Source: Podarcis bocagei (lineage: Eukaryota). Taken from it: a DNA stretch of 64,000 nt. The stretch is from assembly GCA_964188305.1 (NCBI GenBank), contig OZ076894.1; one strand, given 5' to 3'. Under the pieces are notes generated by a model. It saw only the letters and a program-made list of their open reading frames with translations. It was not told where the DNA came from and made no database searches. Each line of letters opens with the position of its first letter. Positions within the stretch are counted from its first letter, which is position 1. Of this stretch, positions 10,794 through 47,730 are shown piece by piece. The position numbers were made by a program, and so were the translations under genes.

Positions 10794-10799
10794 GGCGGC

Positions 10800-15075: not shown

Positions 15076-15090
15076 CACCGTGACCTATGC

Positions 15091-17584: not shown

Positions 17585-17773
17585 CTGGAAGAGCACCACC
17601 TAAGCCAAATGTCATCACTTCTCCATCCATCCAGAGTGACAGAAACACCTCACAGAGAGCCACTCCTTTACCTCTCCTCAACAGTGGATGGTCACATCTT
17701 ATGTGTTGGCCAAGATGGATTGGTTTCCATTTGGAGTGCAAACTTAAAACTGAAGAAAACCTCTCTGATTCTT
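17585..17773 (+). CDS. WD40 gene exon A
   Basis: LEEHHLSQMSSLLHPSRVTETPHREPLL...GQDGLVSIWSANLKLKKTSLIL|GTGAGT. Confidence 0.82.
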
Positions 17774-20700
17774 GTGAGTTTAAGAAGTGAGGTATTATTT
17801 AAAGACTGTGATATTTACTGATAATAGGTGTAAGATCTTCCTACTGAGGCTAAAATGAAAAGGAGATTGCTTTTCTGCTGTCCTAACAATCATTATCATT
17901 CTCTCCCAACACATTCACTCATGACTGTATTTCTCAAAATGATGTCAGCCAAGTATAATTGTGATGAAATTAACTCTGACAAATGTATATATGCTTGTCT
18001 CTACACCGAACCAGACAGATTAAAGGATGATATGAGTTATGTGGGTCTATGGTATCGTCTAAGGCAGGCTTTCTCAACTTTTGGTCCTCAGATGTTGTTG
18101 GACTACAGCTTGCATCATCCCTGAGCGCTGGTCATGCTAGCTTGGGATGATGGGAATTGTAGTACAACAACAGCTGGGTTGAAAAAGTCTGGTTTAAGGA
18201 GCCAAAAGGTTGAACTATGAAATAAGAGAAGTATTTTAGCAGACCCTGAATTGGTAAATCCACAAAGGTTTGGGAGCATACCACTTATGTTCTTAACGTT
18301 CTGTCAAAGGATCAAGTCAAACACATGCATGCACAGAGGCTGACATGCAGAAGGGTTTATATGCATGTTGCTAACAAAAGGTGCTGCCTTCATTCTGAAA
18401 ATCGTGGGATAACCAGCCTCATATAACCACCATGCTTAAATGTAATTAATGCATCAAGGGGTTAAGGCCATTGACTAAGTTGTCCTGCCAGACTTAGCTC
18501 ACCTTGGGAGGGACTAGGTAATCAAGCCTTTGTTCCCCCTCACTCTACCTGAGAAGCACAGCATGTGAAGAGGCTTAGCTGGAGCAATCATGGCTCCAAC
18601 AAACCACTCAAGTTCCTATACCAATAATTTAGGAACGTTCACTACTGTAACCAAGCCAAGTTTTACTGCCTGTGCAACTTTTTCTGAATGCTGTATAGAA
18701 AAGTACACGAATCTGACCTTTGGAGAGTTTGTAAGTAAACCATTTATAATTCACCAAACATGTGGTCTTTTTCTATACTAGGGGAAGTTTTGAAACTCAC
18801 AAAAGAATAACAGCCTATATTTTCACACTTTACTTTGCTGCATGTTTTGTGTTTTTAAACTTCAGTTGAGGTTCTGTCACCAAATAATACTTGCCCCAAA
18901 CCTGGACCCTGGCATCCAAGGAATTCTCCTTTATGTATTTATTTTTTCCACAGCACAAAAAAGACAATGGGCATTTGTTTCAGAAGGATTAATAAAAGGC
19001 AGAAAAGAGGAAAAAGTGAGGAAATGGGGGGGAGGGGTGCATATAAAACAGGAAACAGAACAAGAAATTATCTTCAAGATGCATATAAAACAGGAAACAG
19101 AACAAGAAATTATCTATCAAGGCAGAGGCAATTTTTAAAAAACCCAGGGACATTTATTTGGAAATTTCCTGTGCCTTACTTTGAGAGTTCCTTGTTCAAT
19201 TAACATTTTTATGTGCTCATTGGAAGCTGCAACTGCTTTTAACTTGGTTGATGGCTACCACCACACCAACAAATCACACGTTTTTTCATAGGTTGTTACA
19301 TTCAGGGCTTTCTTATTGCTGCTGCTTCCATTAGAACAGCCTCTGGCCTGGTTCAAATATAATGCTAAACCACAGTGTGATTGAGTCAGGGGGAAGAGGC
19401 ATGTTAAAGCACTGTAGTCTGTTAATTTGGCTGTATTTTGGGGAGCGCCGGGCCATTTTTTTCGCTGGATTCTGCCCCACAGCTTATCAGACTCGGCAGC
19501 TGAATGATGCACATCTGCTGATAAATGAGAAGGTGGCAGCACATCCCCAGGCCCCTGCTCCAGTGGCTGACACATGGTTTTAGTAAACTATATTTTATTA
19601 AACCATGACTTTGTGTTCTATGCGAACCTAGCCCAGCGGCTTAACTATGGTTGCTATGTTTCAGTTTAGATCAGACTTTTGACCATGTTCTCTTTTGGAG
19701 TCTAGGATGAAAATGAAAACAAACTACAAAACAGGAGGCTAAAGTGGGTTTCCGACTCTATTTTAATGGCCCATTACAACAAGCTAATTATTGGAACCTG
19801 GTACGTAGTCAATTTCTGGGTTTCTAAGTATGATGGATATGCTACTACCATTTGAAAAGTGTCACAGAAATTTCACAAATTTGTTCCTAATTCTATAAAA
19901 TACGAACATATTTGTATAAAATGTGAACGGCAAACAAGGAAGAGAAAATGGTAGGCAACACACCTTGTTCATGTTGATGTTATCTTGTTTCATTATGGTT
20001 AATGCAAAGTATTTATAGTTTGCTTGGAGTAAATAGGCAGTAAACTATAAGGTGCTGTTCCAGGTACAAGCCACAGGACTCAGCTATACATCTGCGAAGA
20101 AAACGTTTTGAATGTGTTGTAAAGTGCAATATACAATTGTGATACTAGATGGAGTTGGCGAGCTATAGCAAATTCAATGCATTTTTCAAAACGATTAAAA
20201 AAAAAAGATTTTCACAGTGTTTTAAACATGTGTGTAGATTCTACCCGAGCCTCTGTGAGTCTGCTTCAGAATAAGTGGCCTGTAGGTATTTTAGTGTTAA
20301 TTCACTGCAGGAGCATACCTGTGGTGTTAGTGCTGACATTTTGGATTTTTCTGCTTATATGGTTGATTTCAATATGGCAGCACCCATTTCAGAACCATGG
20401 AGATTCAGGAGAGAAATGGTGTTGGAGTCTCTTGGAGTTCTGTGGCAAACCAGGAATCTTTTCTCATCCACACTTCTTGCCCTTTAGACATCTATTATAA
20501 TTCAGCTGATGTCAAGTAAAGAAAACAAATTATTGTTGTTTAATCAGTGCTAAATCTGAATCCACCATACAATGCAAAATGAATCTGTTGAGTTTTGTCT
20601 AACACAAGAACTAAAACAAGCTGTTTTTAAATTAAAGGTGGAGTGAAAATTGTAGTTTATTAACATCAACTGGCTTTTAAAAGCAACATTTACTGGGGAC

Positions 20701-23700
20701 TTCTGGGTTAGCGCCCTTAAAAACCACGGGCGCGGATGCCCGTGGACATGGTGACTCGGCGGGCACCGTTAGCGCCCTCCCGACCCGCGAAGGAGCCTTT
20801 TTAAAGGCTATGGAACGGGGGACGGGGAGCGGCGCGGTGCTGTGAGTCTACTGCTTCCCCTGCCGAGCGAAGCCGCATGCCATTTGCTGGAGAGCGCTGA
20901 CTTCTTCCTTTAAAAAATTTGGACTCAAAACCAAGAACAACAACCCGTGAGTAATTTGGATAATGGACTAAAATTATTTTTTTGTGAATTTGGCACGAGC
21001 GGGGGAGGTGCAAAGAGGAAGTCCGTCTCCCCCCCATTGTAAACAGCTTAAAGCAAGGATCCGCCAACTAAGGTTGCGAGAAGAGCTGTTTTTTTTTTTC
21101 CTGATTGGATAAAAATTATCAATTCCACGGATTCAAAAGTCTAAGTTACTGTGGTGGAGGACAAGAGTTTATTTGCTTTGATTAAGTGCCACTCTTCTCG
21201 AGACCGGGAGTAACCCGTCAAAGGAGCCTGCTGAGGGTTTACAGAAGATCTTGACAGCTGTCAAATTAGCTGTCAAAGTCGGAAAGAACTGAAAGCTTTG
21301 GTTTAGCCGGTTATATTGTTACAAGGTATTAAAAGTAAAGAAAGATTGATACAAATAAATTTGACTTTTGGTTCGGAAGTGAAAGGAATACTAAGTAACC
21401 AGAATCCCTCTAGAGGGGATTCACGGACATTACAAGAATGGAAATAGGTCGGAAAATTCTAGCAGATCTGGATGAGGTCGTCTTTCTCATGGGAAAGCTG
21501 CAAAAGATGTATGAGCAAGACCATGTTTTGTCTACAAGCCCTACAAAACCGAAGTCAACAGTAAATATATCTTCTGAGCTGGAAAAGGACTTGATGTTCA
21601 AAACACAGGCAGCTGGACAAGAAAAGAAACCAAAGACTGAAGAGGAGGAAAAGATACTTGCTGAACAGGAGGAGCAGAAAGGAGGGGCGGCCGAAATGTC
21701 ACAGAAGGTAAATGGGAGCCGGAGGCCTGTCAAGATGGCTTCAAGCTCGACCAAGGTGGAAGCTGGAGTCTTGGGGATACATGGATTTAAGAAACAGAGC
21801 TTGAGCTCCACCTTTAAACAAGTAGGCCTGGCTGGAAAGATCATGGACATTATAGAGAGAGTGCCCCTTCGAGTTTGGGTGTTAACCATAAGGGACTTTC
21901 AAAGAAGCCGGCTGAAAGGGACTGAAAGAGATTTGAGAGCCTCGGACGTAAGGTCACCAGGCTAAATACATGGACTAATGGACTATGGTTTGGGATTGAA
22001 ACCGGGGAGAGAAGGGTGGGGTTTGGAAGTCCAAAGGGGGCCTGATCTTTTTTATGCTGTGTTAAATTTCATGTTGTTTATCATTATAAGAATGGGGAAT
22101 TCGTGGAAGGGAAATAGGGTCAACCTTAGAAAAAGTTTTCTTTACGTATGATTAAGGTATATAAACTAAAAGTTGATTTATAAATTGAACTAAATATAAT
22201 AATGAATTAAGGGTTAAAATCTAATACAAATAAACACATTAACAAATTAAGGTTAAGACATTAGGGATAAAAACTTGCTGAACAAATAATTGGATTTGGA
22301 ATACAAGAAGGGGAGGTGAGGGGAAGTCGTGAAAAGAAGTTATTGAAAATGAGATTTTAAAGGTAGAATTTTTTATTGTGTTTTTCTTTGTCTTTTTGTT
22401 TTGTTTTTTGTACCTTTTGAAACTTTAATAAATATTATTTTAAAAAAATAATAAAAAGCAACATTTACTGGGCTTTAAAAGTGTTTAATTAACATTGTGT
22501 TTTACAGTAACAGAGAGATACGACTCTATGAGCTCTCCAACTTGGAACCGTATTGCCAAATTGTGGCCCTTGAAACAATGCCTCTGTGTTTGGATTACAG
22601 GTACAGTTTGGACTCAACAGTCTTAACCAAATTACATCCACCCACCTCCCAGTTTATATACCTTTCCCGTGAATATAGAAGAAAGAAGACATATAGTTAT
22701 TTTTTATTTTTAACATTTCCTATATTATATTGAGCTTGGATGAGACTAAAACCTATTTAGGAGCAGAAATACAGAATTAACGCCATCTAATTAACTGCAG
22801 TTCTTATTCTGTTCTAATAGCAATGGAAAAACATACAATCCAACTGCCTCTGTTTACCAGGGACAGCCTGTCCTTTCTTATGCCTGTCCCAATTTTCCTC
22901 CTCTTTTACGCTTCTTGGGACTCTTACACAGCTGCAAATAAAATGTTTCAAGTGTGTTGTAAAGTGCAATATACAAATGTGACACTAGATGATGATGGTG
23001 AGGTATGGCAAATTCAATATATTTTTCAAAACGTTTTTAAAAAAAGCATTTTCACAGCTTTTTTTTTAAATATGTGTGTGGATTCCACCATGGAAATGCC
23101 TTGTTTAAAATTTCATTCATGGAAGATCTTCAGGGTTCAGCTCTGCCCTGCCAGCATTTCTAGAAGTTAGACCTCAGAGCGGGGGAATAGACCCATCTTG
23201 GCTTTTGTACACATGTATTTATACATTGTATTTGTATTCTTCTTTTTCTCCAAGGAGCTACTGTATGTATTAGCTATGATCAGGGTAGAAGCTTTATTTG
23301 AACAAATTACAGACAGACTGTATAATGCTTTTTCTTCCTGTTTAAAGTGTTTGGGGAGAAGGTGAATGCGTGATATCATATGGTGACGAGCAGGTATGTT
23401 GATAAGTTTGGTATGTTTTAATTCAGATATAAACTGAGAAAATGGCACAGCTAGAACTTACTGAGTTTTGCAGTTTGTTTCTAAGAAAGGTATCCACAAC
23501 TTGTAAAAATGAAACACACAGAATATAGGTTTAAATATAATCAGAGATATTTTTTGCTGTTGGGCATTTGCTGCAGGATATAGACTACCCTTCTTCTCCT
23601 GTTCTTTTAAAAGGTAAAGGTAAAGGTACCCCTGACGTTAGGTCCAGTCGCAGATGACTCTGGGGTTGCGGCGCTCATCTCGCTTTATTGGCCAAGGGAG

Positions 23701-25799
23701 CCGGTGTTTGTCCACAGACAGCTTCCGGGTCATGTGTCCAGCATGACTAAGCTGCTTCTGGTGAAACCAGAGCAGCGCACAGAAACACCGTCTACCTTCC
23801 CGCCGGAGCGGTACCTATTTATCTACTTGCACTTTTTGGCGTGCTTTCGAACTGCTAGGTGGGCAGGAGCTGGAACCAAACAACAGGAGCTCACCCCGTC
23901 GTGGGGATTCGAACCGCCGACCTTCTGATTGGCAAGCCCTAGGCTCAGTGGTTTAGACCACAGCGCCACCCGCTGTTCTTTTAACCAATAGTTAAAAATG
24001 ACCTTAGGCGTATGTTGTAGTGGTAATAATGCCGATTATAAATCTGGGTACTGATATGGTGGCATTTTGTTCAATACAGGGCTGTGTTAATATCCTGTTG
24101 ATCAGTTCTGTGGCAGAAACACTGAGGTACGTGACAGTTTGACCAGGCCTATGTGGATTTTAACACAAAGTGTTACCCTATTCCCAAGCACTCTTTCATC
24201 ATCTCTGGCATCTCCAGAGATGTGAAAGACTGTAGTCTAAAATGCTGGAGAGCCTCTACCAGTCTATGTGCACAATATTGAGGTAGATACACCATGCCTT
24301 GCTTCAGAAATGGCTTCCCTGTAATCCTTTAAAAAAAATAAAATGGTCATATCCACACCATACATTTAAAGCAAATGACTTAACCTAAAGAACCATGGGA
24401 ACTGTAGTTTCTTAAGGGTATAGGAATTGTAGCTTCAGGAACTATACTTCCCAGGATTATTTGGAGGAGGGGGTCCATGTGCTCTAAATGCCCATTACAG
24501 TGGTACCTCAGGTTACATACGCTTCAGGTTACAGACTCCGCTAACACAGATATAGTGCTTCAGGTTAAGAACTTTGCTTCAGGATGAGAACAGAAATCGT
24601 GCTCCGGCGGCACAGCAGCAGCAGGAGGCCCCATTAGCTAAAGTGGTGCTTCAGGTTAAGAACAGTTTCAGGTTAAGAACAGACCTCTGGAACGAATTAC
24701 GGTAAGTACTTAACCTGAGGTACCACTGTATTTGTGTTTTCAATATATGGTGTGGATGTGACCTTCCACTAACATGGCTGCAATCCACACTGGATGGGTT
24801 TGGATGATGTGGAGTCCTCAAAAAAGCATCACCAGCCTCTGTCCACAGAATGATGTCAAGTTCACTCCTCTCATGTGCACTGGTGGAGGAAGAGGAGTGC
24901 GGGGGCGTGATCCCAGTAGAGCAGTGTTTCCCAACCTTTTTTGGGCAAAGGCACACTTGTTTGATGAAAAAAATCTCGAGGCACACCACCATTACAGCCC
25001 CGTGACGTCAGCGCGCAGCGTCACGCCGGGAGGGACGCACGAAAGTGTAAGTTTCAATTTTTTCCCCTCCCCCTTGCCGGGGAACCTCCAAGCTTTGGGG
25101 GTGGGGGGGGGAGGAGGCAGCAAAGCGAGGCAGGAAGGATAGCGCGGCTTGGCTGGGTGAGCTTTGGCAGGGGCAGGGAATGAGAGCCACGAGGCGGGCG
25201 CTGCGGACGGAGGCGCTGCCCGCGAGCTTGCAGGCAGCCAGGCAGGCAGACGGCGAGAGCCCCGCGCTGGGCGGCCTCTCCTCACCGCCGCCGCCCCGCC
25301 TCTCGCCGCCTGACTCGCCCGCCTCCCTCCAGGCAACATCTCGCGGCACACTAGTGTGCCGCAGAACAGTGGTTGGGAAACACTGCAGTAGAGTACCATC
25401 GTGGCTGCCCCCTGCCTGCGCTGGGTGCCCCGCCCTCACAGGTAGTGCACTCCACCCCCAGGATGCACACCAGCCCCGCCCCCGCCTGCTCTCAACCCCC
25501 CCCCCCGGTGCCGAAAAATGAAGCTCCGCCACTGCTCGTGTGGAGCTCCCAATTCTGCCCACCAAATTGTGGGCAGAAGAATTCCCACCAGCGGTAGCCC
25601 ATTCTGCAGGTAGCAAGAGTGACAGTTATTTGCACATTTGTTGGCATGCTTCCTTAAAGCTCCTTTAAAACAAAACAAAATCTATTGGGGCATTATTGCA
25701 TCAAGACAAAGTTTGCGAGAATAATTTCCTAGATGCTAGTTCAGAATAGTATGTTTGGTGGTGAATCCAGTATTTTCTGGGTTTCATTCTTCCATCCTA

Positions 25800-25851
<52 letters not shown>

Positions 25852-34800: not shown

Positions 34801-37800
34801 CCTGCGGTTAAATCAAGTTATCCAATAAGTCTTCAGGAAAGACTCTGCATATTTTGTATGCAATTTGCATAGGTGGGGAACCTGTGACCCTGCAGATGTT
34901 GCTAGACTCCATTTAGCATCATTCCTGACCATAGGCTATACTTCCTGGAGCTAGGCTTCAAGTCCAACAACATCTGGGAAGACACAGTTTTCTCCTCCCT
35001 CCTGTGCACACTTACTTGGCAGTAAGGCAAATAAAAAATAGAGTTTTACCTCCGAGTAAGAATTTTATGGGCCATACTTGCAGCTGAGTGTTTGGGTTTC
35101 CAACCTTAGTGTTTTAAACTTACAGTGGTACCTTGGCACTTACAGTGGTACCTTGGTGTCAAATAAATTGGCTCCTGAATGCTGCAAACCCGGAAGTAAG
35201 TGTTCCAGTTTTCAAACGTTTTTCGGAAGCCAAATGTCCAACACGGCTTCTGCTTGAGTCCAAGAAGCTTCTGCAGCCAAATGGAAGCCGTGCCAATTGG
35301 TTTTCAAACAGTTTCGGGAGTCGAACGGACTCTTGGAATGGATTAAGTTCAAGAACTGAGGTACCACTGTAGTGTGTTTATAGCCCTTACACTTGCTGAA
35401 AATAAATGTAACATTTGTGAAGGTGGGTACAGGTAGATTAAGGATGATAAATCATGCCAGTCAGCGCGAAATAAGCCATTGTTTGTTTAGCTTCTGAATT
35501 CTTATATACATATGAAAATCAGTGATGCCACGCTGCTTATGTAGTTTTTTCCTTTTAGGATTCAACACAAAAGGGGTTATATTAGAATTGGCTGTCCTCT
35601 TTAAATAACAGGTTTCAATTTTTTAAAAGATACATCATCTCTGTTGGATGGGGCAGGAAGATCAGTATTTTCCTGGTAAGTATAAATTAATGTTAAGTTT
35701 AGTTGCTCCACTATAAGATGTTGGGAAGGCCAAAAATGGGAAATTTTAGGTGTTCCACAATGAACTCAGTAAGAAATTGGAAGCCCAGAATAACTATACC
35801 AGCATTGTGCACCCGAAAGACAGACAGGCATCTAATATGGAGAATGACTTGTTCAGGATAATGGACACCTGTCGGAGCAGGGTTCTGGAAATTTTTTTGT
35901 CCAATCAATTCATAGAGCTTTTCCTTACAGCCAATGACTTCTTTGAGTAGTATGAACAGTTCCCATTCCCTCTTAATACTGCAGACATGAACAGAAAGTG
36001 TGATGTCTATATGTGCATAAGTATGACTGGTTTATTGGAGGCTATTAGTAATGACAACTACATGTTCAAAGGCAGAATGCTTCTAACAAATGCCAGGGAG
36101 CACAACTGGGAGTGGGGTGTTTCCTTCAAGATATCCCATGTAGGCTTCCTCGAGGCATCTGATGGGTCACTGGAGGAAGTTTTGGGGAATGACTGTAGCT
36201 CAGGGACAGAGCACAGTCTTTATGTGCAGAAGGTCCTAGGTTCAGTCACCAAGTAGGGTTGGGAAACACTTCTGTCTGAAACCAAGGTTAGCTGCTGCCA
36301 CAATACACATCTCGTTGGATTGATTTTGTGACTTGGTATAAAACAGTTTCCTATGCTCATTTCTAAGTATGATGCCAGATTATATGGATCTTTGGTCTAA
36401 TCCAGTTGGCTGTTATTATGTTTCTAATCTCTATTATATGGCTCCCCCACCCCAAATCAGAATTGTCTTGTGTCTACAGCTGATCCTACCTACCCCATGG
36501 ATGTGAATGAAAGGCAAAGTTGTCTGACAATATTTTTCAGTTTCTATAGCTCCAGCATTGCCTTTTTCTAGAAATATGAGTAGTACCAGTAGCACTGCTT
36601 TGACACACATCATTAACCTATGTTTAAGTAAAAAATAAATTTGTTTATCCATGAAAGAATTATGAATCTCTGGAACCAAAGATGGAACTGAAAAGTTTTT
36701 AATTTCAGGATATTGATGATGAAGTCGTTGAAGGCTCATACCCACAACTGGACTGGATTAGAAGTATGGTAAGATATTAACTTGCAGTGAGAAATGGTAG
36801 TTAAACATGAATAAAAGTTGAAAAGATTTCTACATGAATTTGCTTAGAGCAGAGCAGGGCCACCCAAATGTTGCTAAACTACAACATCTGTTATCCCTTC
36901 CCGTTAGCCATGCTGGATGGGACTGATGAGACTTGGGAGACCAATAACATCTGGAGAGCCAGAGATTCTCTACTCTTAGTTTAGAGCATAAGATACACCC
37001 CATGTGTGCTTGATAGGGCAATGACGGCATGATAATGACCACTTTGCCATTGCACCATGCAGGAACAGGGCCACAAGGACGATATTTTATGTGTAGCTTC
37101 GTGTCCTCCACATTTCTTGGCCACTTCTAGTTTTGATGGTGAAGTTCTCATATGGAATCTGGTATCAGGACATCTCTGCAGCCGTCTTCATGCTGTAGAC
37201 AGAGCAGCAAGGGAAGGAGAAACAGGTGAGTAGGATTAGACCTTTTGCTGTGCTAAAATAAATGCTTAAAAGAACTCACACGGTGTGGTGAGAGAAGTGA
37301 AAAACGAAGAATGTACAGTGTCAGTAATGAAAATGTTTTAAAAATGGATTTCCTGTCTGTGCCACCACAAATGGTAAAAAAAAAAGGATCTGTGGTAACT
37401 GGAGTAAATTGCACGGTGGGCTACAACCACTGCACAAATCTAGCTGACCAGGCAATAACCACTTGGAAGACATTTAAATATTATTCTGTGTGACAGCCAC
37501 AGTATGTGCAAATTCCAGCCCCCATTGCTGTTGCTACATATTTTAAAGGGGAAAGTGGCTATGTTGATACACACAGGGTTTTTTTTTTATCTGGGTCTCC
37601 ATTTCCAAGTACAAAATGTTGAGTTAAAAGAACTTAGACTCCCAAGTCATTTGGTGTGTTTTCAAATCACAAGATGAACCAAGTAGATTGAGGAAGCTGT
37701 GAGCAAATTTTACTATGTGACAAGGTGCTACACCTTTACCTGACGTACGGCAACATCCTCCCACACAGAACAATTAAAGCCGCTCCCCAAGGAGTGGTAA

Positions 37801-40800
37801 TCATATGCACAGGTGGCCTCCATCTGCCTCCACTACTGACACCAGTCTCCCTGCCTGCTCACATAGTTGGTAAATGTTAGATGTGCACCATCTCAAGCCT
37901 GGAGTGAGGGTGCTTCCTGTGAGAGTTTATTGTGGGAGCGCAGAGTCCACACAATGGAAATGTCACCCAATTGCCAGCTTCTGTGTACCTGCAGGTATAT
38001 GTACCTGTGCCATCAATTGCGGATAACACCTCATTCATCCGATGAAGTGGCCTGTTGCCCACAAGAACTTATGCTGTAGTAAATTTGCTAGTTTTGCCGG
38101 TGCTACAAGACTGTGTGTGAGAGGAAGTGTCTTGTGGAGTCTCCTGGGTAAGCTGGGCTTGGCTTTACAGATTACAACAGTGAAATGCATTGCTGACAAA
38201 TATCCTGTGCTGGTGTGAGATTGTGGAAATACTTTGTGCTGGATTGTGCTGGAAATGCTTTCATGGTTCGTTTTGTCCCCTCCCAGAGGATTTAACCATC
38301 AATAAAATCATTTTCCTCTTATCAAGGCTGGAAAAGAAGAAAACAGCTGCAATGTTAGTGGCTAGTGGACCCAGAGGTAAAGACAAAAGTTAAATAAATA
38401 AATAGTTAGTTAGTTAGTTAGTTAGTGTGGGGCTGGGGTTCAGAGGCCTGCATATGCTCAGATCCCATATTCTTCTCACGGCTCCAGGTACTCACCAAAA
38501 ACCTGCTCACAGATTGGGGAACCTTTCAAAATGGCTGCCAATGCAGTGCAAGGGCCTGCAGTCCAAAGGGTGTTTCAGGGCCAGGCTAGGCAAGACACTA
38601 TTCATACAACCATCAATTGTGTGAAAGGTTATTTGGGAGGCTGGGGGCTTGCATTCCCGCTGCATTCCTCACACCATATATTTAAAGAACATTGCTTCCC
38701 CACCCCCTGAAATCTGGGAACTGCAGTTTACTCCTCACAGAGCTATAATTTCCAGCACCCTTAACAAACTACAGTTCCTGGGATTCCTTAGGAGAAACAA
38801 AACGTTTTAAATGTTGGTATGGATGTGATCCGACTATTGTCATTGGGAGAAAAAAACTACCATTGCAGCCATTAGAGCTTTCCTCTCAATCCAAATATCA
38901 GGCAAGCAGGGCAGGGAGGTGGGTGGGAACACCCCGATGGCCCCTGAGGCTGTCATAAGTTGCAGCACTTGTGACTTTGATGGTGCAGCACCATGGCCAA
39001 GAGACTGAGCTACGAATCAGGTAGAGCTCCCAGTCCAAAGCTCACCTCCGCCATTAACTCAATGGCTTTAGGTAAGAGTCTCTCCCTCTCTCCTTCAGTC
39101 CCCCCCCCCCATTTGCAATATGAGAGAGAATAATCCTGATTTACATGGTTTCTGTAAGGATGAGTTAGCTAATGCACTGGACGCACTTTGAAGCACCTGA
39201 GAGTGATACCCAAATACAAAATATTATTAACAGGATGTTGTTCAATCATTGACACTTAAGAGGCAATGCCTCTTAAGATTAGCGCTGTTGAAAGAAGCAC
39301 TCAGATCAAACAGGCATTTTAGCAAGGGAGATCCTTTCTTAAGAAATTCAACTCAAAATTTCTTCCTTCTGCCAACTGCATATTGAGAAGAGGCTTTAGG
39401 CCTTGCATCAGTACCTAGATTTGTGGAAGGATGTTACTCTGTAGAAGCTTTCTGAAACAGTCTTAGTATAGAGCCTATTGTGTGACCATTGTAGGGTCAG
39501 AATGAACATTTCAGTACAGAGAAAAAAATTCAGGTTTCAGAGTTTCTAGCAGAAAACCAACACTCCCCAACCACAGGGCAGACTTATACTTTAAGGGGGG
39601 AATGCAGAAAATCTCATTTTCATCTATATGATACTGTTATTGATACCGTGATTGCTGTTATTTCCCAGGTTATATTGCATTCTGGAATATATATGGCCGT
39701 GGGAGCCTTTTTGCTTATTTCTCTAGTGTAAGTGCTGCTCATTTTCTGGAAGAATGTTTTACATGTTGCTAATTTCCATTTGTAAGGCCTCTGTATGTTT
39801 TTATTAGTGCTGTGAGATTCCTAACAGTTTGGAAACAAACAAAATAAGAACTAGATCTTTAAATAATTCATAACTGGAAGTGGCACACATTCATTTAGGT
39901 TGCAATCCTAAACACCAGGGCTGGGTAGCTAGTGGTCCTCCAGATGTTGCTAGACCACAAATCCCATCTTTGCAGACCACCATCCATGCTGGAGTCCAGT
40001 AACATCTGGAATGTCATAGGTTCCCTACCCCTGCTAGCTACACTTACTGGGGGAGTAAGCCCCGTTGCATGTTGTAGGATCGACTTCTGAGTAAATATGC
40101 ATAGGATTGCTCTGTGCATTAGGGCTTTGCCTGTATCCTCTTCTGACTTTTCATATGATGGTAGTCTAAGCATCAAGGTGAACCCAGAGACAGTGCTAGC
40201 CCAGGGCATCTTGTGATCAGAGACAAAGGACAAGATGCCACCCTGCTGCTTCCACATACAGAAGCTAGCTAGACTGAGAGCTGACCCTCAGTGGTATCCC
40301 TCCCTGAGGGCAACAGGTTACTTTAGGAGATACAGAGTGTGGGGCATGCACAACCCTATCCCCTCCAACAACCCTGTTTGCATAGCACAAAACCATGGGT
40401 TGGTATTACATTAGCATCAACCCAATATGTAACATAATGTGCAATCAAAATAAAGAGTAAACAATATCCTATTGATAGTTGGGCTGGATGCATGCATTTC
40501 ACACGTTTGCTTGGCTTAAGAGTCAGGACAGCCTTAAAACGTAGGCACTTCTTGCCTGTGTGTGCCGAAATTGCACTTAAAATCTCACCACATGCACCAA
40601 CTGAAATGCAAAACTATCATTCACCAAAAGTGACACAAGAAACGAAGTGCTCCTAAGAGTGCAAGGAAGCTTCAATCCAACACACCCTTCTAGGCAGGGC
40701 AGGGAGCGAGTTCCATTGAACTTGGTTGAATTTATTTCTGAGAACATCATCACAGAATTATGCTGTTAGTCCTCCCTCTTGAAAGAGAGTAAAAATAAAA

Positions 40801-40914
40801 TAATGCATTGCTTAAAGGACATTTCCGCCGCAACTTTAGTACTGAAGCTTCTACAATCCAGCAGCTAACAGATGAGTTTGTTACATGATTGTATGTATGT
40901 ATGTATGTATGTAT

Positions 40915-40967
<53 letters not shown>

Positions 40968-43900
40968 TCCTTGCTTGCAGTCAAAAGAGAGATCCACAGT
41001 CAGTGACATGGCAGTTGATGACAAGGACTTCCTCTTGTGTGCAGGAGACCAACTGGGCTTTCTCCATATCTGGAACATTGCAGAATATGCCATTAATGGC
41101 CCAGAAGCCAAGCCACCAGTTTGTGAGAGAAACATTTTTATTCAAAACCCAAAAGTTTCATATTTGCTCCTGAGTGTACAGTATGTCCTTACCTTAGTCT
41201 CCCCTCCTTCTTTTTTCAAATAGTACTTCACAGCTGGAACACTCACAACTGCAGCATAACCAGGTAAGACACGCTGAGGAAAACAAGGCCCATGAGGAAA
41301 GATTAGGAGCTGGTGAATCCATTGGGGACAAGCTCCCTTTACTTACATTTTAGGCCACCTTCTCATGGTGCACTGGTGGTGGCAGTGTAGCTCTTTTGCC
41401 TGCACTGCCTGCTTGGTAAGAAAGCACAGACCCTGTAGAAGAGCAGTGGGGAGCTGGATTCAGCCAGAGGATTGGGTGCTTATCTCCCCCTCCCCCATGG
41501 GCCAACTTTGAAAGGCACACAACATCACAACGGCACTTGAAAGGCACATGACACCACAATGTCAATAGGTGATCTGTTTTTCCATAGCACCATTGCAAGC
41601 CACAACAATCAGCACTGTGCTTTGCAAGTCCTGAGCATCAGCCAGTTGTCTGCGCTGGCAAAGTACTGTGTATGGCATGTATCCCCCTTTTGGCTCAACT
41701 GCATCTTTATTTGCCCCACACGTGACATCACATATGATGTCGCATGTTGGGCATGTGGGTATGGTTTGGCATTGAGGAGTTCTACGAGTATTGCCATTCT
41801 AGCTGTGGAAAGAACTTGAGAAACAAGATGTTTAAGAGAGTAAGGAAATTCCGCAGCAGTGCCTATTTTCAGAGCAGTTGTCAATATAACAAACTAAACC
41901 CATTTTCTTTTTCCAATGGAGTAGCATCAGCCTTATGAATGAGCACCAGCTTCTCCTCACTACTTCTTTAGACTACAATGCAAAGTTGTGGAGCCTAAAA
42001 GGGGAATATATAGGTAAGATTTAATTTTAGGTGGAAATACATATACATTATTACACACCACTCCAATCTCCCAGCAGTGTGAGATTCCAGGCTCTTACCC
42101 AGGGTGCATGTTTCCTTTTGGTAATGAGTACAGTGGAAGCTGTGGTCTCTTTGATATATGGTTTATTTACACACATATACAACTTAAGCCTACAGTGGAG
42201 GGGTTCACAGCATCAACAACCCAAGAGAGTATTGTTTCCTCCATAGCAGCAGCCTTGAATTCAAACAGAAATCAAACATCGTGCTCTGCCTTTCTGCTTT
42301 TCTTCTCGGTCACAACACAACCAAACTCAACTCTAAACTCTGGCTTTTGGCGTTCTATCTGTGAGTTGAGGGAGGGGCCCTACCTATTTGCTGTATTGCA
42401 CAGAGCCCCCTTAATCCTATGTTCTCTTAATCTCATCACGAATCTAGCCTGGCTTACATTTTAACACTTGTTGGACCCAGGAATAAGGAGTTGTTGCACC
42501 CACAAACTGATAACTATACACACACTGCATGATCTGTCTGCAATCCACATACCCCTATCCTGTTTTGCCACATCAAACTTTCTCTGATTGCATCTGGAAC
42601 GGAACCATCACCACTGCATCGTCACGGAGCAGAAGTCTTATCCATTGCTACTAACCATGATGGCTACTGCTTGTCCTCCACGGTTGAGGCCGTAATGCTT
42701 TTGCACACGTCTCTGGAAAGCATAGGGCTGGAGATTGCTCTTGTGCCCAGGTCCGGCTTGCAGGTCTCCCACAGGCATGCTCATAGGTGTCCACTATGCG
42801 AACAGGATGCTGGTCTAGGTGGCTCATTGGCCTGACCCTGCAAGCTCTCGTTATGTTCTTATGTGGTTGTTCATTCCCGAGTACTGTAACAGTGGTTTTG
42901 GTTTTTTGAAAGCTTTATTTTGGGTTGTATCCAAGCAAGTTATTCAGTTAGCAGGTCTTCCACCTGCACAATGGGACTTCCTCTTCCTTTACTCTCCTGT
43001 TGTCCTCCCAAATCTGTCCTGTGGTTTTCTCCAACCCTTTGGAGAAGATTGGTTGGGGGAGGAAGGGAGCAGAAATTTCATTGCGCAGGCAGATGTTTTT
43101 ATCTAACAGGACAACTTGGTTGGATATAGTCCTTTGTCTACATGCAAGTAAAAGTTGAATATATGCATAACAGAGAAGATTCTGAGGTAGTCAAGTATAA
43201 CATTTTAAAGTAACTTTACTTTTTTTAAATTAAAAAAGGTACATTTGGTCAAAGAGAACCATGGAACATAAAAGAGAAGTCATCTTGGGGACTATCAGAA
43301 TCCAACCCGAGTTCAGAAAATAGCTCTGACTCTTTTGGACACGAATCTACAAGGACCTTTGACACACAGAAGAAATCCAAGATGGATGCTGAGGTAGGAA
43401 TATTATCATCACTGGGCAGTATTTGAATTTTATTTAGAGCAGACACACTGAAATTAATGAGCATGACTAAGTTAGGTCCATTAATTTCAAAAGGTCCACT
43501 ATGATTAAAAATTAGCTCTCTCCCATTGTCTTTTCTTTATATTAGCATTTGGCTTCATTGCCATCTGGCTCCTGTCCCCAAACCAGGTATATTATATTCT
43601 TGATAATTAAGGATAAAATTTCATGTATCTGATGAAGTGGCCTGCAGCCCATGAAATACTCAACAGTATACTCCCCCTCCCCAAGCTCAATAGCTCTTGA
43701 GATGTGAAACTGCATAGCTTTTTTAATCTGGACAAATCTGCGATTTTTGCAAGTCTCTGATAAGTATAATGAAAAAGATGAAGAATCAGAAAATGGGATA
43801 AAATTTAATGAAGTGTTCATTGAGTACTGTATTGGTCCTCTGCCTTCTTCTCAGCTCTTTTTATGGAAATGAATGCTTTATGCCTGCTTGCCACGTGGAG

Positions 43901-45870
43901 GGACTGGAAAACAGCATAATTTTCAGAATATTTTTTTAAAAAAACTATTATGTTGGTGTCAGGGGTTTAGGAGCAGAGGCACGGGCAAGGGAGGAAACAG
44001 AGAGCGAAGGGGAGGAGGCAGAAGAAAAGATGAGTGATGACGACGACCCGAGATCTCCTAGTCTTTCCAGTGAATCAGAGGATTCACAGAAAGGAGCACC
44101 AGTGGCCAGGGCAAGGGGGGAGTCAAGGGGGGCACCCCAGGAAGATAGAGCCAGAAGGGACTCAGGGGGGAGCAGCTGGAAATCGGGACCAGCGTCACCG
44201 CCAGGAAGCAGGGAAGAGGAAGGGAGCCAGGGGGGAAGCGCTGGCAGCTCACCACAGGAGGGAGGGCATGAGTCAGGAGTGGCCACACCTCCATCGGGGA
44301 GCGAAGAAACGGTTAAGAGGAAGGTGGAAGGTTGGGCGCGCGCGCCAAGTTCAAATGCAGAGGAAGGCGGCGCAGTAAGCAGCCCCGAAAGGGAACCAGG
44401 TCCTAAAGCCCGGCGCAAGGAGGCAGGAGGGTCCGGGTCAGCGTCAGAAGAATCCCGGAAGGAGGAGGCCCCGGGGGGTAGAGGGACCCAGAGGAGGACA
44501 GTCAGGCGGAAAAGGTGGAGCAAGGCTAGGATATTAAGCTGGTGCTCACGGGGCGGAGACTCAGACGGAGCTTCGCCGATATAGCTACTAGACGTAGAGT
44601 TTGCGCGCAGCAGCGTGAGAATGGAAACTGTAATTCAATAAAGACTTTTACTTAATGATCGCTGGCTAGCGTGATCCTCTGTGAGCTAGGATCTTCAAGC
44701 AGCTCTGACAGTTGGCTTATCCTGGTTTTGCTAAAAAAATTTTGCCTGCTCCTCTTAGATTTTAAGAATGAGATGCTAGGTTCCTTACAGTTCAGCAGCT
44801 TCTAGCTCTTTGTAACAAAATAATTTCAAATCAAATTTACTTTTTATTTATGTTCTTTTAACATACCAAACATAATTTAATGGCTAAACACGTTATACAC
44901 AATACTTTGTTACTTTTGGAACCAAAAAATAACATTTGATCTGTAATATATGCTTTATAGAAAGTATTTTACTACCTTGCAACCATTTTACTACCTTTTC
45001 TCAGTCCTACTGCTACTATCGCCCTTTGCTTCAAAGCTAAAATTATACCGCACAATTGTGTCACCAACTCACCCCACAAGCCCTTTCTCCCTTCTGGGAA
45101 AGCATTGTAATTATAGTTGCTGTTTCACCAAAAACCTTTGTTTTCTGGGAAATCATTGCTCCCTGTGTACTTTGAGGGCACTTCTCTACCCAGCCTAAAT
45201 GACTGGTATGTTATCCCATAGATGATTTGGGACACTTGCACTTCAAAGATGGTAATAGATGATGAACTTGCTGAAGAACTGAAGCAAAGGCAGATAGACA
45301 GACTACACAGGTGTGTACAACTTGAATTTAAATCCTCTTTATTCACCGACAACATACTGGCCCATACTAGGTTAGCTTAACAGATATGCAAGTCTTGCAT
45401 GGCGTAATAGAATGCTGCACTCTATAAATACACAGGACAACTGAAAATTAAATTGTGTTGACAGATGAGTCCATACTCAAGTGCAGTCTCTGTGTGCGAT
45501 ACAGTAGCAACATGTATTTCTCAAAGCTGCTTTTTGCATCTACCATTCCCTTTGTGTGCCTTGTTAGAAGTTTCCCAGACTCCTAGCTATCCATATAATC
45601 TATTCTCTCCCCATTCCCTCATCTAATTTCCCAAATTTAAGAAGTCTTAATTTTATGTCATTTGGAAAAGTATCCCTCTTACAACTACTAGCCAGAAAGA
45701 AAACAGCACACCACTTATCTTTCAGATCAAAGCAGTTCCAGTGGAAACCTATTCAACATGATGCAAACCGAATAAATTCTTATCACTCTCTTCCACTGTG
45801 TGAGTTAGCCGACACACAGCTTGCCTTCCACAAACCAAATCTAGCAGCAGAACTTGATGACCCATTTTAG
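17585..45870 (+). CDS. WD40-repeat protein, WDR49/WDR95/WDR64/WDY-like; 25 coding exons, 2586 nt, ~861 aa from first resolved exon (Met at 17609)
   Basis: All 25 exons have AG/GT flanks and join in phase with no stop; many WD repeats (HKGVKTFDF...TGGLDRNIRLWN, LRGHTSPI...SLDSTIKVWD, GHKDDILCVA...SSFDGEVLIWN); true 5' end uncertain. Confidence 0.88.
18065..18191. mobile_element. Short hAT MITE
   Basis: caggctttctcaac / gttgaaaaagtctg termini; TSD gt(c/t)taagg. Confidence 0.65.
19038..19115. repeat. Tandem duplication, ~42-bp unit x2
   Basis: tgcatataaaacaggaaacagaacaagaaattatct occurs twice. Confidence 0.8.
19706..19800 (+). CDS. WD40 gene exon B
   Basis: DENENKLQNRRLKWVSDSILMAHYNKLIIGT; phase 0->2. 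Confidence 0.85.
20696..22453 (+). mobile_element. L1-mobilised non-autonomous retroelement (~1.75 kb) with a single 175-aa ORF
   Basis: 17-19-bp TSD aaaagcaacatttactg(gg) at a TTTT/AAAA site; CpG-rich 5' end; AATAAA 22427-22432 and A-rich tail; ORF 21438-21965; no RT motifs. Confidence 0.8.
22508..22600 (+). CDS. WD40 gene exon C
   Basis: NREIRLYELSNLEPYCQIVALETMPLCLDY; phase 2->2. Confidence 0.87.
23348..23393 (+). CDS. WD40 gene exon D
   Basis: VWGEGECVISYGDEQ|GTATGT; phase 2->0. Confidence 0.8.
23611..23972 (-). mobile_element. Sauria-type SINE, near full length
   Basis: A/B boxes, (ACCTTT)n tail, 12-bp TSD ctgttcttttaa. Confidence 0.92.
24080..24126 (+). CDS. WD40 gene exon E
   Basis: GCVNILLISSVAETL; phase 0->2. 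Confidence 0.83.
24498..24728. mobile_element. Tigger/pogo-like MITE
   Basis: TA TSD; TIR cagtggtacctcaggtta; near-identical copy at 29783. Confidence 0.9.
24922..25385. mobile_element. CpG-rich hAT MITE
   Basis: TIR cagtgtttcccaacc / ggttgggaaacactg; perfect 8-bp TSD cagtagag. Confidence 0.9.
25805..25850. repeat. (GT)23 microsatellite at a splice acceptor
   Basis: Read directly; ends 8 nt before exon F. Confidence 0.95.
25859..25976 (+). CDS. WD40 gene exon F
   Basis: NWTKYPPVEEIPTISANAIYEQENITFIRWKVHNDWVTK|GTAAGA. Confidence 0.87.
26321..26390 (+). CDS. WD40 gene exon G
   Basis: IQYIPSMESVISSSNDDCTALVI|GTAAGT; phase 0->1. Confidence 0.87.
26963..27268 (+). mobile_element. Rex1/Babar-type LINE 3' end
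   Basis: HPGNDVFQLLPSGRSYRVIKTRTMRLRNSFYPNAILVLN, then AATAAA and (gtatt/gtatc)n tail. Confidence 0.75.
27700..28417 (-). mobile_element. Solo LTR with nested MITE
   Basis: TGTTA...TAACA termini; 5-bp TSD tcttc; TATA and AATAAA on the minus strand; internal ~47-bp tandem duplication. Confidence 0.8.
27830..28252. mobile_element. Tigger/pogo-like MITE with internal tagcggct minisatellite
   Basis: TA TSD; TIR cagtggtgcc(t/c)cgcaagac. Confidence 0.88.
28462..28705 (+). CDS. WD40 gene exon H
   Basis: YVSRTKNVKHRL...FKVHKGVKTFDFCRESNILVTGGLDRNIRLWNPYVP; phase 1->2. Confidence 0.92.
29547..29652 (+). CDS. WD40 gene exon I
   Basis: WPIAILRGHTSPIGFLCIAHGSTNIFSVSLDSTIK|GTAAGG. Confidence 0.9.
29783..30008. 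mobile_element. Tigger/pogo-like MITE (second copy)
   Basis: Same family as 24498-24728; TA flanks. Confidence 0.9.
31145..31296 (+). CDS. WD40 gene exon J
   Basis: VWDIEDHSCLLTVMPKASQIRGEMEACYFSPDLQALYVAAETFGLLQFQY; phase 0->2. Confidence 0.88.
31509..31636. mobile_element. Short hAT MITE
   Basis: caggg...ccctg termini; TSD ct(a/c)tagag. Confidence 0.7.
32247..32349 (+). CDS. WD40 gene exon K
   Basis: ENQNQDSGTSHNKPIFCCQYNQQLQHVISCSEDS|GTAAGT. Confidence 0.88.
33220..33326 (+). CDS. WD40 gene exon L
   Basis: VIKMWDLKTGQLIVKVREAHGGAAVTCMALDTIGK; phase 0->2. Confidence 0.9.
34373..34452 (+). CDS. WD40 gene exon M
   Basis: LITGGADGSLKKWDSSTLGYMHTIKQ; phase 2->1. Confidence 0.87.
34537..34594 (+). 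CDS. WD40 gene exon N
   Basis: ISSADEVTACTYADLYDN; phase 1->2. Confidence 0.82.
35123..35369. mobile_element. Tigger/pogo-like MITE with duplicated left terminus
   Basis: acttacagtggtaccttgg twice in tandem; right end gaggtaccactg-ta. Confidence 0.75.
35630..35675 (+). CDS. WD40 gene exon O
   Basis: YIISVGWGRKISIFL|GTAAGT. Confidence 0.85.
36709..36768 (+). CDS. WD40 gene exon P
   Basis: DIDDEVVEGSYPQLDWIRSM|GTAAGA; phase 0->0. Confidence 0.78.
37063..37225 (+). CDS. WD40 gene exon Q
   Basis: EQGHKDDILCVASCPPHFLATSSFDGEVLIWNLVSGHLCSRLH...|GTGAGT. Confidence 0.88.
38287..38376 (+). CDS. WD40 gene exon R
   Basis: DLTINKIIFLLSRLEKKKTAAMLVASGPR; phase 1->1. Confidence 0.85.
39669..39727 (+). 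CDS. WD40 gene exon S
   Basis: YIAFWNIYGRGSLFAYFSS|GTAAGT. Confidence 0.85.
40891..40966. repeat. Compound microsatellite (GTAT)n(TAT)n
   Basis: Read directly; just upstream of the exon T acceptor. Confidence 0.95.
40981..41122 (+). CDS. WD40 gene exon T
   Basis: SKERSTVSDMAVDDKDFLLCAGDQLGFLHIWNIAEYAINGPEAKPPV; phase 0->1. Confidence 0.88.
41224..41263 (+). CDS. WD40 gene exon U
   Basis: LHSWNTHNCSIT|GTAAGA; phase 1->2. Confidence 0.82.
41925..42013 (+). CDS. WD40 gene exon V
   Basis: ISLMNEHQLLLTTSLDYNAKLWSLKGEYI|GTAAGA. Confidence 0.87.
43239..43393 (+). CDS. WD40 gene exon W
   Basis: TFGQREPWNIKEKSSWG...KSKMDAE|GTAGGA; completes the YIGTFGQ motif. Confidence 0.83.
43957..44710 (+). 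mobile_element. Solo LTR (754 bp, probably Gypsy-like) containing a long ORF
   Basis: TGTCAG...CTGACA inverted termini; 5-bp TSD gttgg; AATAAA 44637-44642; ORF 44030-44584. Confidence 0.85.
45222..45310 (+). CDS. WD40 gene penultimate exon
   Basis: MIWDTCTSKMVIDDELAEELKQRQIDRLH; phase 0->2 bridges exon W and the last exon. Confidence 0.7.
45726..45870 (+). CDS. WD40 gene last coding exon
   Basis: SKQFQWKP...SYHSLPLCEL...KPNLAAELDDPF*; CAG acceptor, phase 2. Confidence 0.78.
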
Positions 45871-46113
45871 TTGGAAATTTAACAGCTTCTTGGACAGGCT
45901 GCAGGGCAGAGGCCGCCTTTAAGCAACCAAGCAACTTTTCTCAAATGTATGATGTGTAAAAAGCAAGCAGAATTTATAAAGTGTGCTGATGTGTTTTTTT
46001 CTGACCAAAGAACTTTGATGGCTGTTAAGAGATCACTCCTCTTCGTGGACATTAATCCCATTGGTTAGGACGATTACTGTATTACAGTAGCAGATTAAGC
46101 TGAAACTAGTGGC

Positions 46114-46119
46114 AATAAA
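46114..46119 (+). terminator. Candidate poly(A) signal of the WD40 gene
   Basis: First AATAAA after the stop codon, ~245 nt downstream. Confidence 0.5.
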
Positions 46120-47730
46120 AAAGTCTCAGGGGAACATCACTTCTGGTTCAAGAAGTAGATTTAAATATTTATTATAAATTTTTACACACAATCTCTGGTA
46201 AATTAGTGTTGCCACTTGGAAATCAACTGACATATTCATCCATTTGTGCATGATGTCACTATGAAGGATTCCATCCCTTTACATATAAACACTTTGCATA
46301 CTTAAACACTGCTATAAGGTTATCCAAGCTGAACACACTCCTGTCCCATGGAGACACATTTACATAAGAAAACACTTGCTAAATATAAAATGTCTGTAGA
46401 ACCCTGGCCATGGCAGCTGATTGACTTTAGCTTCAGCTTCCGTTATGGTGAACTGATTTCCCCAATTCACAGCTTCATTTTTCTGTGTTTTGAGGTACAT
46501 GCCTGTTATGAGAAAACTAAATGGAGTCACCTTGCAGCTTACAAGAATTGTACCATTTTGCTATTCACAAATTTATCCTAACAAAATAGCAAATGGTGTT
46601 TTTTTAAATTGGGCAATGCAATTTAGCAAGCCTCTGTCCTCCTCATACATACTAATTTAATATATTCACAGGAACCCATTCCAAATTCCCAACTGTGGAA
46701 ATGAATTTGAAATTGCAAAGATCATTCTTCATAATATGATTTTACACTTCTGACTTGAACTTGCTAGCTGGCAGCCTTGGGTATTCTAACTGCTGTTTAA
46801 AGTAGCTCTTCTGAAGCAAGGCTGGAAATAAAACAGTCTTGTTTTGGAACCTTAGGTATCTCTCTGTGTGTATTGTGTCTGTGTGCAAGAAAGGAAGATA
46901 GCAGGAAAGTTTCTACTTATACAGAAAGGTAACTCAAAAAACGACAACATTGGTCTGTAGGATAACAGCTCTGTAGAGAAGCTTGTACTGTGAATTATGG
47001 CCTATTAATCTGCTGATTTTTGTAAGATACCTACTTAATTTAAGTAGCAATTAGGAATTAAAATGGAGCGGGGGTTTAGATGAAAAAATTGTGGGAAATT
47101 GCAGTCAAACATAATATGCATGATTGCTACTCACTGCATGAATGGGTTAAGAAAATAGACCTGTATTCCCAGACTTGGCTATGTCACACACCCTCTTCTC
47201 TGATGTGCTAGGAAGCAAAGCCTTCTCTTCCTGTTCTCCCTCTGATCAAGGAGCAAGCTTAGGGCATGCGTTTGAAGTTTTCATTCTGTATATTCTGTCT
47301 TCTCCTTGCTGCTGCTTCGATAAATGCATGAATCTGACTTTTGGAACATTTTGTAAGTAAAGCTTTTTAAGCTAACAGTGTGTGGTTTGTTCATTGCCAG
47401 AGGGGTAAAAAGAGAGGAGTGATGTGTGCAACTAAATGGGTTATGAAAAGGGTTTAATAGCCTATATTCCCATGCAATAGTGCTGCTTGACTTTTGTGAG
47501 TTTAAACTCTGATACTGGGGGCTCTCTCCTGCTGGAGAGTTCATTCAGCCCTGCATTTTGAATCCAGGCACACAGCCGATTCTTTCATTCATATCCCCCC
47601 AAGGATTCATACCCCTCCCCCAAACTAGTACCAAGGCCTGCATTCCGACTCAGTTAAATAAATACCTATAATTAAATTGCAGCCAATTTAAATTTACACC
47701 AAATTTAAGTGAGAAACTAGCCGCTTAAAT

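Follow-up and report, generated by a model that had tools for sequence, protein, structure and literature searches.

INTRODUCTION

WDR64 of the 96-nm repeat of bovine sperm, whose epithelial paralogue is WDR49/CFAP337, has a tandem WD40 architecture. WDR64 sits atop the CCDC96/113 coiled coil, touching CFAP57, CFAP58 and CFAP299 (PMC11779644). [quoted passage not shown] Chlamydomonas FAP337 is missing when FAP57 is mutated (PMC6761771). In mouse, Wdr95 is enriched in testis but not needed for male fertility, and the gene lacks a human orthologue (PMC13253961). Here we describe a gene of the lizard Podarcis bocagei that is a member of this family (FAP337/WDR49/WDR64/WDR95/EFCAB8/WDY, referred to below as the CFAP337 family). 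It lies in a stretch of 64,000 nucleotides (nt) of contig OZ076894.1, assembly GCA_964188305.1, which we call the window, between PLK4 and a gene of the Hsp110 type. The gene belongs to a vertebrate clade (clade S) whose nearest relative is the clade of Wdr95 (clade L), and its protein lacks the N-terminal EF-hand pair of clade L.

RESULTS

An unbroken frame through 25 exons

Orthologues were placed on the window by tblastn and the matches joined in a splice-site-constrained chain guided by the Podarcis muralis "CFAP337-like" protein (P0131). The resulting model has 25 exons on the plus strand at 17609-45870 (Table 1). All 24 introns are GT-AG with pyrimidine-rich acceptors, and the summed exons give a coding sequence (CDS) of 2562 nt that encodes 853 amino acids (aa), from the ATG at 17609 to the TAG at 45868-45870, without an internal stop. 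The window contains no N runs. Upstream of the ATG the frame remains open for 24 nt, back to 17585. An initial annotation of the window, made without database searches, had described 25 exons in one uninterrupted frame of 2586 nt, and this length was reproduced exactly (2562 + 24). It had also remarked that the exons were mostly invisible among the listed open reading frames (ORFs), and most of them are indeed below the length needed for that list. Between PLK4 and the Hsp110 gene, short open pieces resembling WD40 are dispersed along 28 kb of the plus strand. Two large ORFs, 21414-21962 (183 aa) and 43940-44581, were rejected as exons; each lies in a block absent from P. muralis and has no significant Pfam family.

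The codon at 17585 is CTG, with a TAG just before it. In geckos and turtles the start ATG is at this position, and the proteins of geckos, a cordylid and turtles begin at the equivalent of 17585 with M-(M/L)-E-E-H. The CTG replaces the ancestral ATG in both Podarcis species (the P. bocagei window and P. muralis). Since geckos, the cordylid and turtles initiate at this point, the Podarcis start codon is, judged from the comparison, shifted eight codons downstream. Translation in Podarcis presumably initiates at ATG 17609 or at CTG 17585.

The C-termini of the two Podarcis species differ by four residues. In P. muralis, as in each of the four RNA runs, the codon matching the TAG stop at 45868 reads CAG, which lengthens the protein by QLEI. 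At the exon 15/16 junction (35675/36709) the public P. muralis protein carries three additional residues, EFQ. We found no canonical GT-AG site that yields EFQ in either the window or the P. muralis locus; upstream of exon 16 both species are identical and read TAA-TTT-CAG in frame.

The window protein falls in one of two vertebrate clades

Single canonical WD40 exons matched only generic WD40 proteins in PDB and Pfam. The family-specific exon 10 (query 31145-31297) retrieved 81 proteins in an exhaustive HMMER search of predicted proteins (no length filter, 1.84 billion representatives); generic multi-repeat WD40 proteins ranked below the family members from S, L and invertebrates. Named matches included Varanus 'WDR49 partial', a turtle protein, Xenopus tropicalis 'WDR64', Discoglossus 'CFAP337-like', coelacanth, skate and others. 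With a 900-aa Xenopus orthologue as query there were 229 relatives at E<=1e-20, all bearing names of the family. The top tier consisted of proteins of ~865-890 aa without an EF-hand Pfam match, from frogs, salamanders, caecilians, lungfish, turtles, five lizard genera, sturgeon, bowfin and shark. The second tier consisted of EF-hand proteins of ~1080 aa.

Trees were built with FastTree (69 rows) and IQ-TREE (LG+G4, 46 rows, 885 columns). In the IQ-TREE tree S, L and lamprey formed a vertebrate clade with 100/100 support, in agreement with FastTree; the position of lamprey within this clade was unresolved. By both methods, all nine invertebrate sequences (cnidarian, mollusc, nemertean, echinoderm, hemichordate and amphioxus) lay outside it. 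Clades S and L were each supported at 100/100, and each is gnathostome-wide and follows the species tree. The window protein falls in clade S, apart from clade L with its Wdr95-named proteins. Clade S, with proteins of ~870 aa, contains shark, skate, sturgeon/paddlefish, bichir, gar, bowfin, coelacanth, lungfish, amphibians, turtles and lizards, the lizards being geckos, lacertids, a cordylid and Varanus. In clade L each species has a single gene; the clade extends from chimaera to mammals, with Podarcis, Zootoca, Anolis, snakes, Xenopus, teleosts, a tinamou, alligator, monotremes, marsupials and many placentals among its members.

Clade L could be tied to Wdr95 through database entries of that name. 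The mouse fragment 'WD40 repeat domain 95' (UniProt D6RIJ3) is 90% identical to the hamster clade-L protein, and Peromyscus entries of the same name share a 90%-identity cluster with P0211, a Peromyscus protein retrieved among the clade-L matches. Therefore, clade L is Wdr95. Within Podarcis, the S and L proteins are 43% identical over 744 aa, and branches in S are ~1.5 times as long as those in L on matched species pairs. By the topology of these trees, S and L arose by a duplication on the vertebrate stem.

The initial annotation had assigned the gene to the WDR49/WDR95 family as a sister of Wdr95. The first part is borne out by full-length homology to proteins named CFAP337, WDR49, WDR95 or WDY, and the second is supported by the position of S beside the Wdr95-holding L in a vertebrate-only clade. 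It had also raised the alternative of a one-to-one orthologue of a named mammalian gene; the window gene does not appear to be one, and clade S holds no mammal, bird or teleost. Among the best 120 matches listed for the clade-S and clade-L queries there was no mammalian WDR49/CFAP337 or EFCAB8. A teleost query, a poor model of the teleost clade-L gene, found only teleost clade L among the matches listed and no WDR49 or WDR64.

Bovine WDR64 (PDB 9fqr_No) scored 144 bits against the lizard S protein, at ~19% identity, compared with 154 bits against alligator L and 143 against amphioxus. Since S, L and amphioxus all stand at an equal distance from bovine WDR64, a WDR64 identity of the window gene was rejected. 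By these scores true WDR64 is a distant paralogue, and the genes of Xenopus S and Alligator L carry the 'WDR64' label wrongly.

Public names vary within both clades. Clade S genes are called 'WDR64' in Xenopus, 'WD40 repeat domain 95' in gar (Ensembl/UniProt), and 'CFAP337-like', 'WDR49-like', 'WDR64-like' or WDY-like elsewhere. Clade L genes are called 'CFAP337' in sharks and teleosts, 'WDR64' in alligator, 'WDY' in many fishes and once, on an alligator fragment, 'TEX26 isoform'; we take TEX26 to be the neighbour of HSPH1 at human 13q12.3. The gene had initially been described as unnamed. This holds only with the qualification that RefSeq and Ensembl already annotate it, under names that do not agree (CFAP337-like, WDR64, WDR49-like, wdr95).

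Two propellers without the EF-hand pair

The 99%-identical P. muralis orthologue P0131 stood in for the window protein in the whole-protein searches and in the fold prediction. The window protein has two tandem WD40 beta-propellers and a disordered tail. Pfam WD40/propeller models span residues ~260-660 of P0131. An AlphaFold2 model from a 40-row alignment had a mean predicted local distance difference test score of 77.9, with beta structure from residue 1 to ~745 in two propellers, mostly scoring >85. The tail (748-860) was of low confidence and contains nearly invariant positions, for example E798 and D854. Over 40 S, L and invertebrate sequences, 44 columns were invariant. The top Foldseek matches were WDR64 (9fqr_No, 4e-40) and a chain associated with the Tetrahymena N-DRC (nexin-dynein regulatory complex), 8tid_Z (4e-31), which represents CFAP337A,B; generic tandem propellers ranked below. 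The Tetrahymena proteins have a coiled-coil bundle beside the two propellers, whereas the lizard protein starts at the first propeller.

No EF-hand was matched by Pfam in P0131; the clade-L protein of Podarcis (P0215) has EF-hand_7 at 128-193. Residue 3 of S aligns with residue 210 of L, and S is without the N-terminal ~207 residues that include the EF-hand pair. The N-termini of all 16 clade-S orthologues compared begin just before the first propeller, with no EF-hand coding sequence upstream. S and the ~1080-aa L share the same two-propeller body and differ at the N-terminus. Of the features looked for in a CFAP337-family protein, full-length homology and two tandem propellers are present and the N-terminal EF-hand pair is not. 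Chlamydomonas FAP337, found in the flagellar proteome, is an EF-hand plus WD protein, unlike lizard S.

The locus is an intact, transcribed gene under purifying selection

The window protein is identical to P0131 at 843 of 853 residues, and the two loci are 96.8% identical over 38 kb with all 24 splice-site pairs conserved. There are 19 nucleotide differences in the 2562 nt of CDS, 8 of them synonymous and 10 non-synonymous. The non-synonymous rate (dN) is 0.0050 and the synonymous rate (dS) 0.0147, giving a dN/dS, which the initial annotation had pointed to as a check, of 0.34 on 18 substitutions. The mismatch divergence of the introns (0.0164) is close to dS, and exons diverge by 0.74% as against 1.6% for introns.

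Transcription was followed in RNA contigs from three runs of two studies, in a sister species 95-99% alike. The joints 41122>41224, 41263>41925, 42013>43239, 43393>45222 and 45310>45726 correspond to introns 20-24, and a single 592-nt contig covers exons 20-24. In one contig (run X3) exon 21 is joined directly to exon 23; without the 89 nt of exon 22 the frame would be shifted. In a stranded raw-read run, the few reads on the WD exons had their first mate on the minus strand, so the RNA of the WD gene is from the plus strand. A much stronger signal from the opposite strand ran from 46400 down to ~45316, just downstream of exon 24 (run X23). A minus-strand transcript therefore overlaps exon 25 antisense, 3′ to 3′; it is probably a long HSPA4L 3′ untranslated region or read-through, though a separate antisense RNA would also fit.

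S and L are each convergent with a different Hsp110 gene

In the window, PLK4 (minus) is head-to-head with the WD gene (plus), and the Hsp110 gene (minus) is tail-to-tail with it. The order around clade S is PLK4(-)/S(+)/Hsp110(-) in P. muralis (838 aa) and spotted gar (861 aa), and PLK4(-)/S(+)/INTU(-) in Xenopus tropicalis. Around clade L it is L(+)/Hsp110(-) in tinamou (856 aa, 3.5 kb apart) and goat (859 aa, 4.6 kb apart). In opossum and shark the clade-L gene extends over more than 200 kb, and no neighbour is seen within 10 kb. The Hsp110 exons of the window are 100% identical to the P. muralis neighbour and 36-71% (~50%) identical to the tinamou neighbour, and the two Hsp110 genes are therefore paralogues. 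A PDB search with a C-terminal Hsp110 exon gave no match. The window Hsp110 is of the 838-aa HSPA4L type, not the HSPH1 type expected tail-to-tail with a gene of the Wdr95 group. Thus L lies beside an HSPH1-sized Hsp110 gene and S beside HSPA4L and PLK4.

The convergence with HSPA4L and the place beside PLK4 had been read from the window initially; the first recurs in P. muralis and gar, the second in Xenopus as well. A block (whole-genome) duplication predicts just such a pair of sister WD genes, each with its own convergent Hsp110 paralogue. The proposal that the gene is an ohnolog is thus supported by both the vertebrate-stem duplication (100/100) and the convergent Hsp110 paralogues, HSPA4L-type for S and HSPH1-sized for L in goat and tinamou.

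Distribution of clade S

The initial annotation had the gene kept in lizards and lost in mammals. Clade S is found in geckos, lacertids, a cordylid and Varanus, and also in turtles, amphibians and some fishes. No S-type protein was found in mammals, birds or teleosts, where all exon-10 matches were of the L type. Absence in mammals therefore stands at the level of predicted proteins, with loss from the genome only inferred. Mammals, birds, snakes and teleosts, none of which yielded S, do have clade L. In human, Wdr95 is represented by the pseudogene WDR95P. According to the initial annotation, the human PLK4-HSPA4L interval is not known to hold a protein-coding gene.

Other features of the window

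Table 1. Coordinates of the WD gene and its neighbours in the window
Feature	Coordinates	Strand	Evidence
Leader LEEHHLSQ, open in frame, begins CTG	17585..17608	+	comparison with gecko and turtle starts
Exon 1, 165 nt, ATG, aa 1-55	17609..17773	+	tblastn P0131 98%; donor CTT/GTGAGT
Exon 2, 95 nt	19706..19800	+	tblastn, splice chain
Exon 3, 93 nt	22508..22600	+	tblastn, splice chain
Exon 4, 46 nt	23348..23393	+	tblastn, splice chain
Exon 5, 47 nt	24080..24126	+	tblastn, splice chain
Exon 6, 118 nt	25859..25976	+	tblastn, splice chain
Exon 7, 70 nt	26321..26390	+	tblastn, splice chain
Exon 8, 244 nt, longest, WD40 repeat	28462..28705	+	Pfam PF00400 2e-6; tblastn, splice chain
Exon 9, 106 nt, WD40	29547..29652	+	Pfam; tblastn, splice chain
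Exon 10, 152 nt, family-specific	31145..31296	+	tblastn, splice chain; query of exhaustive HMMER search
Exon 11, 103 nt	32247..32349	+	tblastn, splice chain
Exon 12, 107 nt	33220..33326	+	tblastn, splice chain
Exon 13, 80 nt	34373..34452	+	tblastn, splice chain
Exon 14, 58 nt	34537..34594	+	tblastn, splice chain
Exon 15, 46 nt	35630..35675	+	tblastn, splice chain
Exon 16, 60 nt	36709..36768	+	tblastn, splice chain
Exon 17, 163 nt, canonical WD40	37063..37225	+	Pfam; tblastn, splice chain
Exon 18, 90 nt	38287..38376	+	tblastn, splice chain
Exon 19, 59 nt	39669..39727	+	tblastn, splice chain
Exon 20, 142 nt	40981..41122	+	tblastn, splice chain; RNA joint 41122>41224
Exon 21, 40 nt	41224..41263	+	RNA joints both sides
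Exon 22, 89 nt	41925..42013	+	RNA contigs; skipped in one contig of run X3
Exon 23, 155 nt	43239..43393	+	RNA joints 42013>43239, 43393>45222
Exon 24, 89 nt	45222..45310	+	RNA joints
Exon 25, 145 nt, TAG 45868-45870	45726..45870	+	splice chain, RNA
PLK4 5′ part, ATG at 10793, kinase exon 1138-2214	1..10795	-	Pfam Pkinase 4e-45; start-codon peptide of 10 aa
HSPA4L-type Hsp110 gene, 3′ part, last coding exon ends ~52236	52233..64000	-	Hsp110-type exons; 838 aa in P. muralis
Minus-strand transcription antisense to WD exon 25	45316..46400	-	stranded RNA run X23

Intron 23 contains a GC-rich block of 754 bp (43957-44710) that is absent from P. muralis and holds a serine/glycine/glutamate-rich ORF of 214 aa without a Pfam family. 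RNA contigs cover the block at very high depth on both strands and continue into unlike sequence, and the block therefore duplicates a sequence that is expressed elsewhere, either a repeat or a fragment inserted by retrotransposition. Two further blocks, 20697-22452 (1.75 kb, with ORF 21414-21962) and 45903-47423 (1.5 kb), are missing from the P. muralis locus. By eye, 2596-3431 (+), inside a PLK4 intron, resembles a Tc1/mariner-like transposase remnant, and 8988-9521 (-) and 14528-15142 (-), between PLK4 and the WD gene, resemble reverse-transcriptase-like fragments of long interspersed nuclear elements. The pieces of these transposase- and reverse-transcriptase-like fragments that were run against Pfam gave no match at E<=0.01.

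DISCUSSION

We consider it probable that the window gene is a live, EF-hand-less sister of Wdr95 that arose by block duplication, was later lost in several lineages and has an axonemal role. The WD-Hsp110 pair would have been copied as a block in the early vertebrate genome duplications, giving S and L from one vertebrate-stem ancestor. Later losses of S would have affected mammals, birds and teleosts, with crocodilians, snakes and iguanians as possible further cases.

It is improbable, in our judgement, that clade S is instead a fast-evolving orthologue of mammalian WDR49 (CFAP337) or WDR64 that in mammals left its place between PLK4 and HSPA4L, with nothing lost. The NCBI name of the Xenopus clade-S genes is indeed 'WD repeat-containing protein 64' with no '-like' attached, and our trees contain neither WDR49 nor EFCAB8. 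The Alligator clade-L gene bears the same name, however, which makes such names unreliable, and bovine WDR64 is equidistant from S, L and amphioxus. The best mammalian matches of the clade-S query are all of the Wdr95 type, with no plain mammalian CFAP337 or WDR64 among the best 120 listed, and an Hsp110 neighbour kept by both S and L fits block duplication rather than translocation. An older, pre-vertebrate tandem or segmental duplication, with the Hsp110 neighbours due to coincidence or later rearrangement, seems to us very improbable. It could draw on a divergence from L that is greater for S than for invertebrate homologues, clade S being absent from the best 120 matches of the clade-L query, where nemertean, mollusc and echinoderm proteins are present, on the unsettled lamprey position and on a crinoid gene described below that has no Hsp110 neighbour. 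Against it, all nine invertebrate sequences lie outside the vertebrate clade in both trees, none of them groups with S, and two separate Hsp110 paralogues in the same tail-to-tail orientation would hardly arise by chance.

There is least to be said for a decaying copy that is transcribed but no longer selected for its protein, en route to loss as in other lineages. The faster evolution of S (~1.5-fold in IQ-TREE branch lengths), the change of the ancestral ATG to CTG, the differing stop position in the two Podarcis species, the frame-shifting exon-22-skip isoform and the low expression in the stranded run would all suit such a copy, as would the fertility of the mouse Wdr95 knockout (PMC13253961). 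Yet the 853-codon frame is unbroken through 25 exons and every splice site is conserved. Both the dN/dS and the lower divergence of exons than introns speak for constraint, as do full-length orthologues that track the species tree from sharks to lizards and the 44 columns invariant across S, L and invertebrates.

Some observations weigh against an intact, block-duplicated and widely lost axonemal sister of Wdr95. The trees lack true mammalian WDR49/CFAP337 and EFCAB8, so that an exclusive sisterhood of S and Wdr95 cannot be shown, and the comparison with WDR64 is by bit score only. The absence from mammals, birds and teleosts is an absence from predicted-protein collections, not genomes. The dN/dS is built on few substitutions (18), and expression of the WD gene was very low in the one stranded run. 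Axonemal docking may require the N-terminal domain that S lacks, and the function may then differ from that of CFAP337. Finally, the CFAP337-like gene of the crinoid Antedon mediterranea has no Hsp110 gene within 10 kb and so gives no sign of a linkage before the duplication. Its neighbours are RING, 310-aa mitochondrial-carrier and PTEN-like phosphatase genes, the latter two following the CFAP337-like gene (23115-30859, L005). We take the mitochondrial carrier SLC25A31 to adjoin HSPA4L in human; the Antedon carrier could be a trace of an older linkage, or chance.

By analogy with its relatives, the S protein would have its place in the 96-nm axonemal repeat, in sperm flagella or motile cilia, where it would use its propellers to dock on the CCDC96/CCDC113 coiled coil next to CFAP57 and the inner dynein arms. 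Lacking the EF-hand pair, it may act there as a calcium-insensitive variant of the Wdr95/CFAP337 hub. WDY of Drosophila belongs to the same family by homology, and its name has propagated to many vertebrate clade-L proteins; it is an insect Y-linked gene and is set beside S by name only.

The window gene adds a clearly delimited new member to a known family; it does not represent a novel kind of system. We lean slightly towards a broader picture in which the CFAP337 family of ancestral jawed vertebrates counted a fifth gene, a sister of Wdr95 that had no EF-hand, was blind to calcium and lay fixed between the centriole kinase gene PLK4 and HSPA4L. Several independent losses would have removed this gene (in mammals, birds and teleosts, perhaps also in snakes and iguanians), and it would encode a lineage-variable inner-dynein/N-DRC hub component of sperm or cilia. 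The split into S and L puts order into the muddled naming of the family, and the WD-Hsp110 pair would be an old linked unit that was duplicated with the genome. A lineage-variable, EF-hand-less protein would be added to the list for the axonemal 96-nm repeat, which bears on the comparison of sperm and cilia across vertebrates, and the clade S gene is testable in Xenopus.

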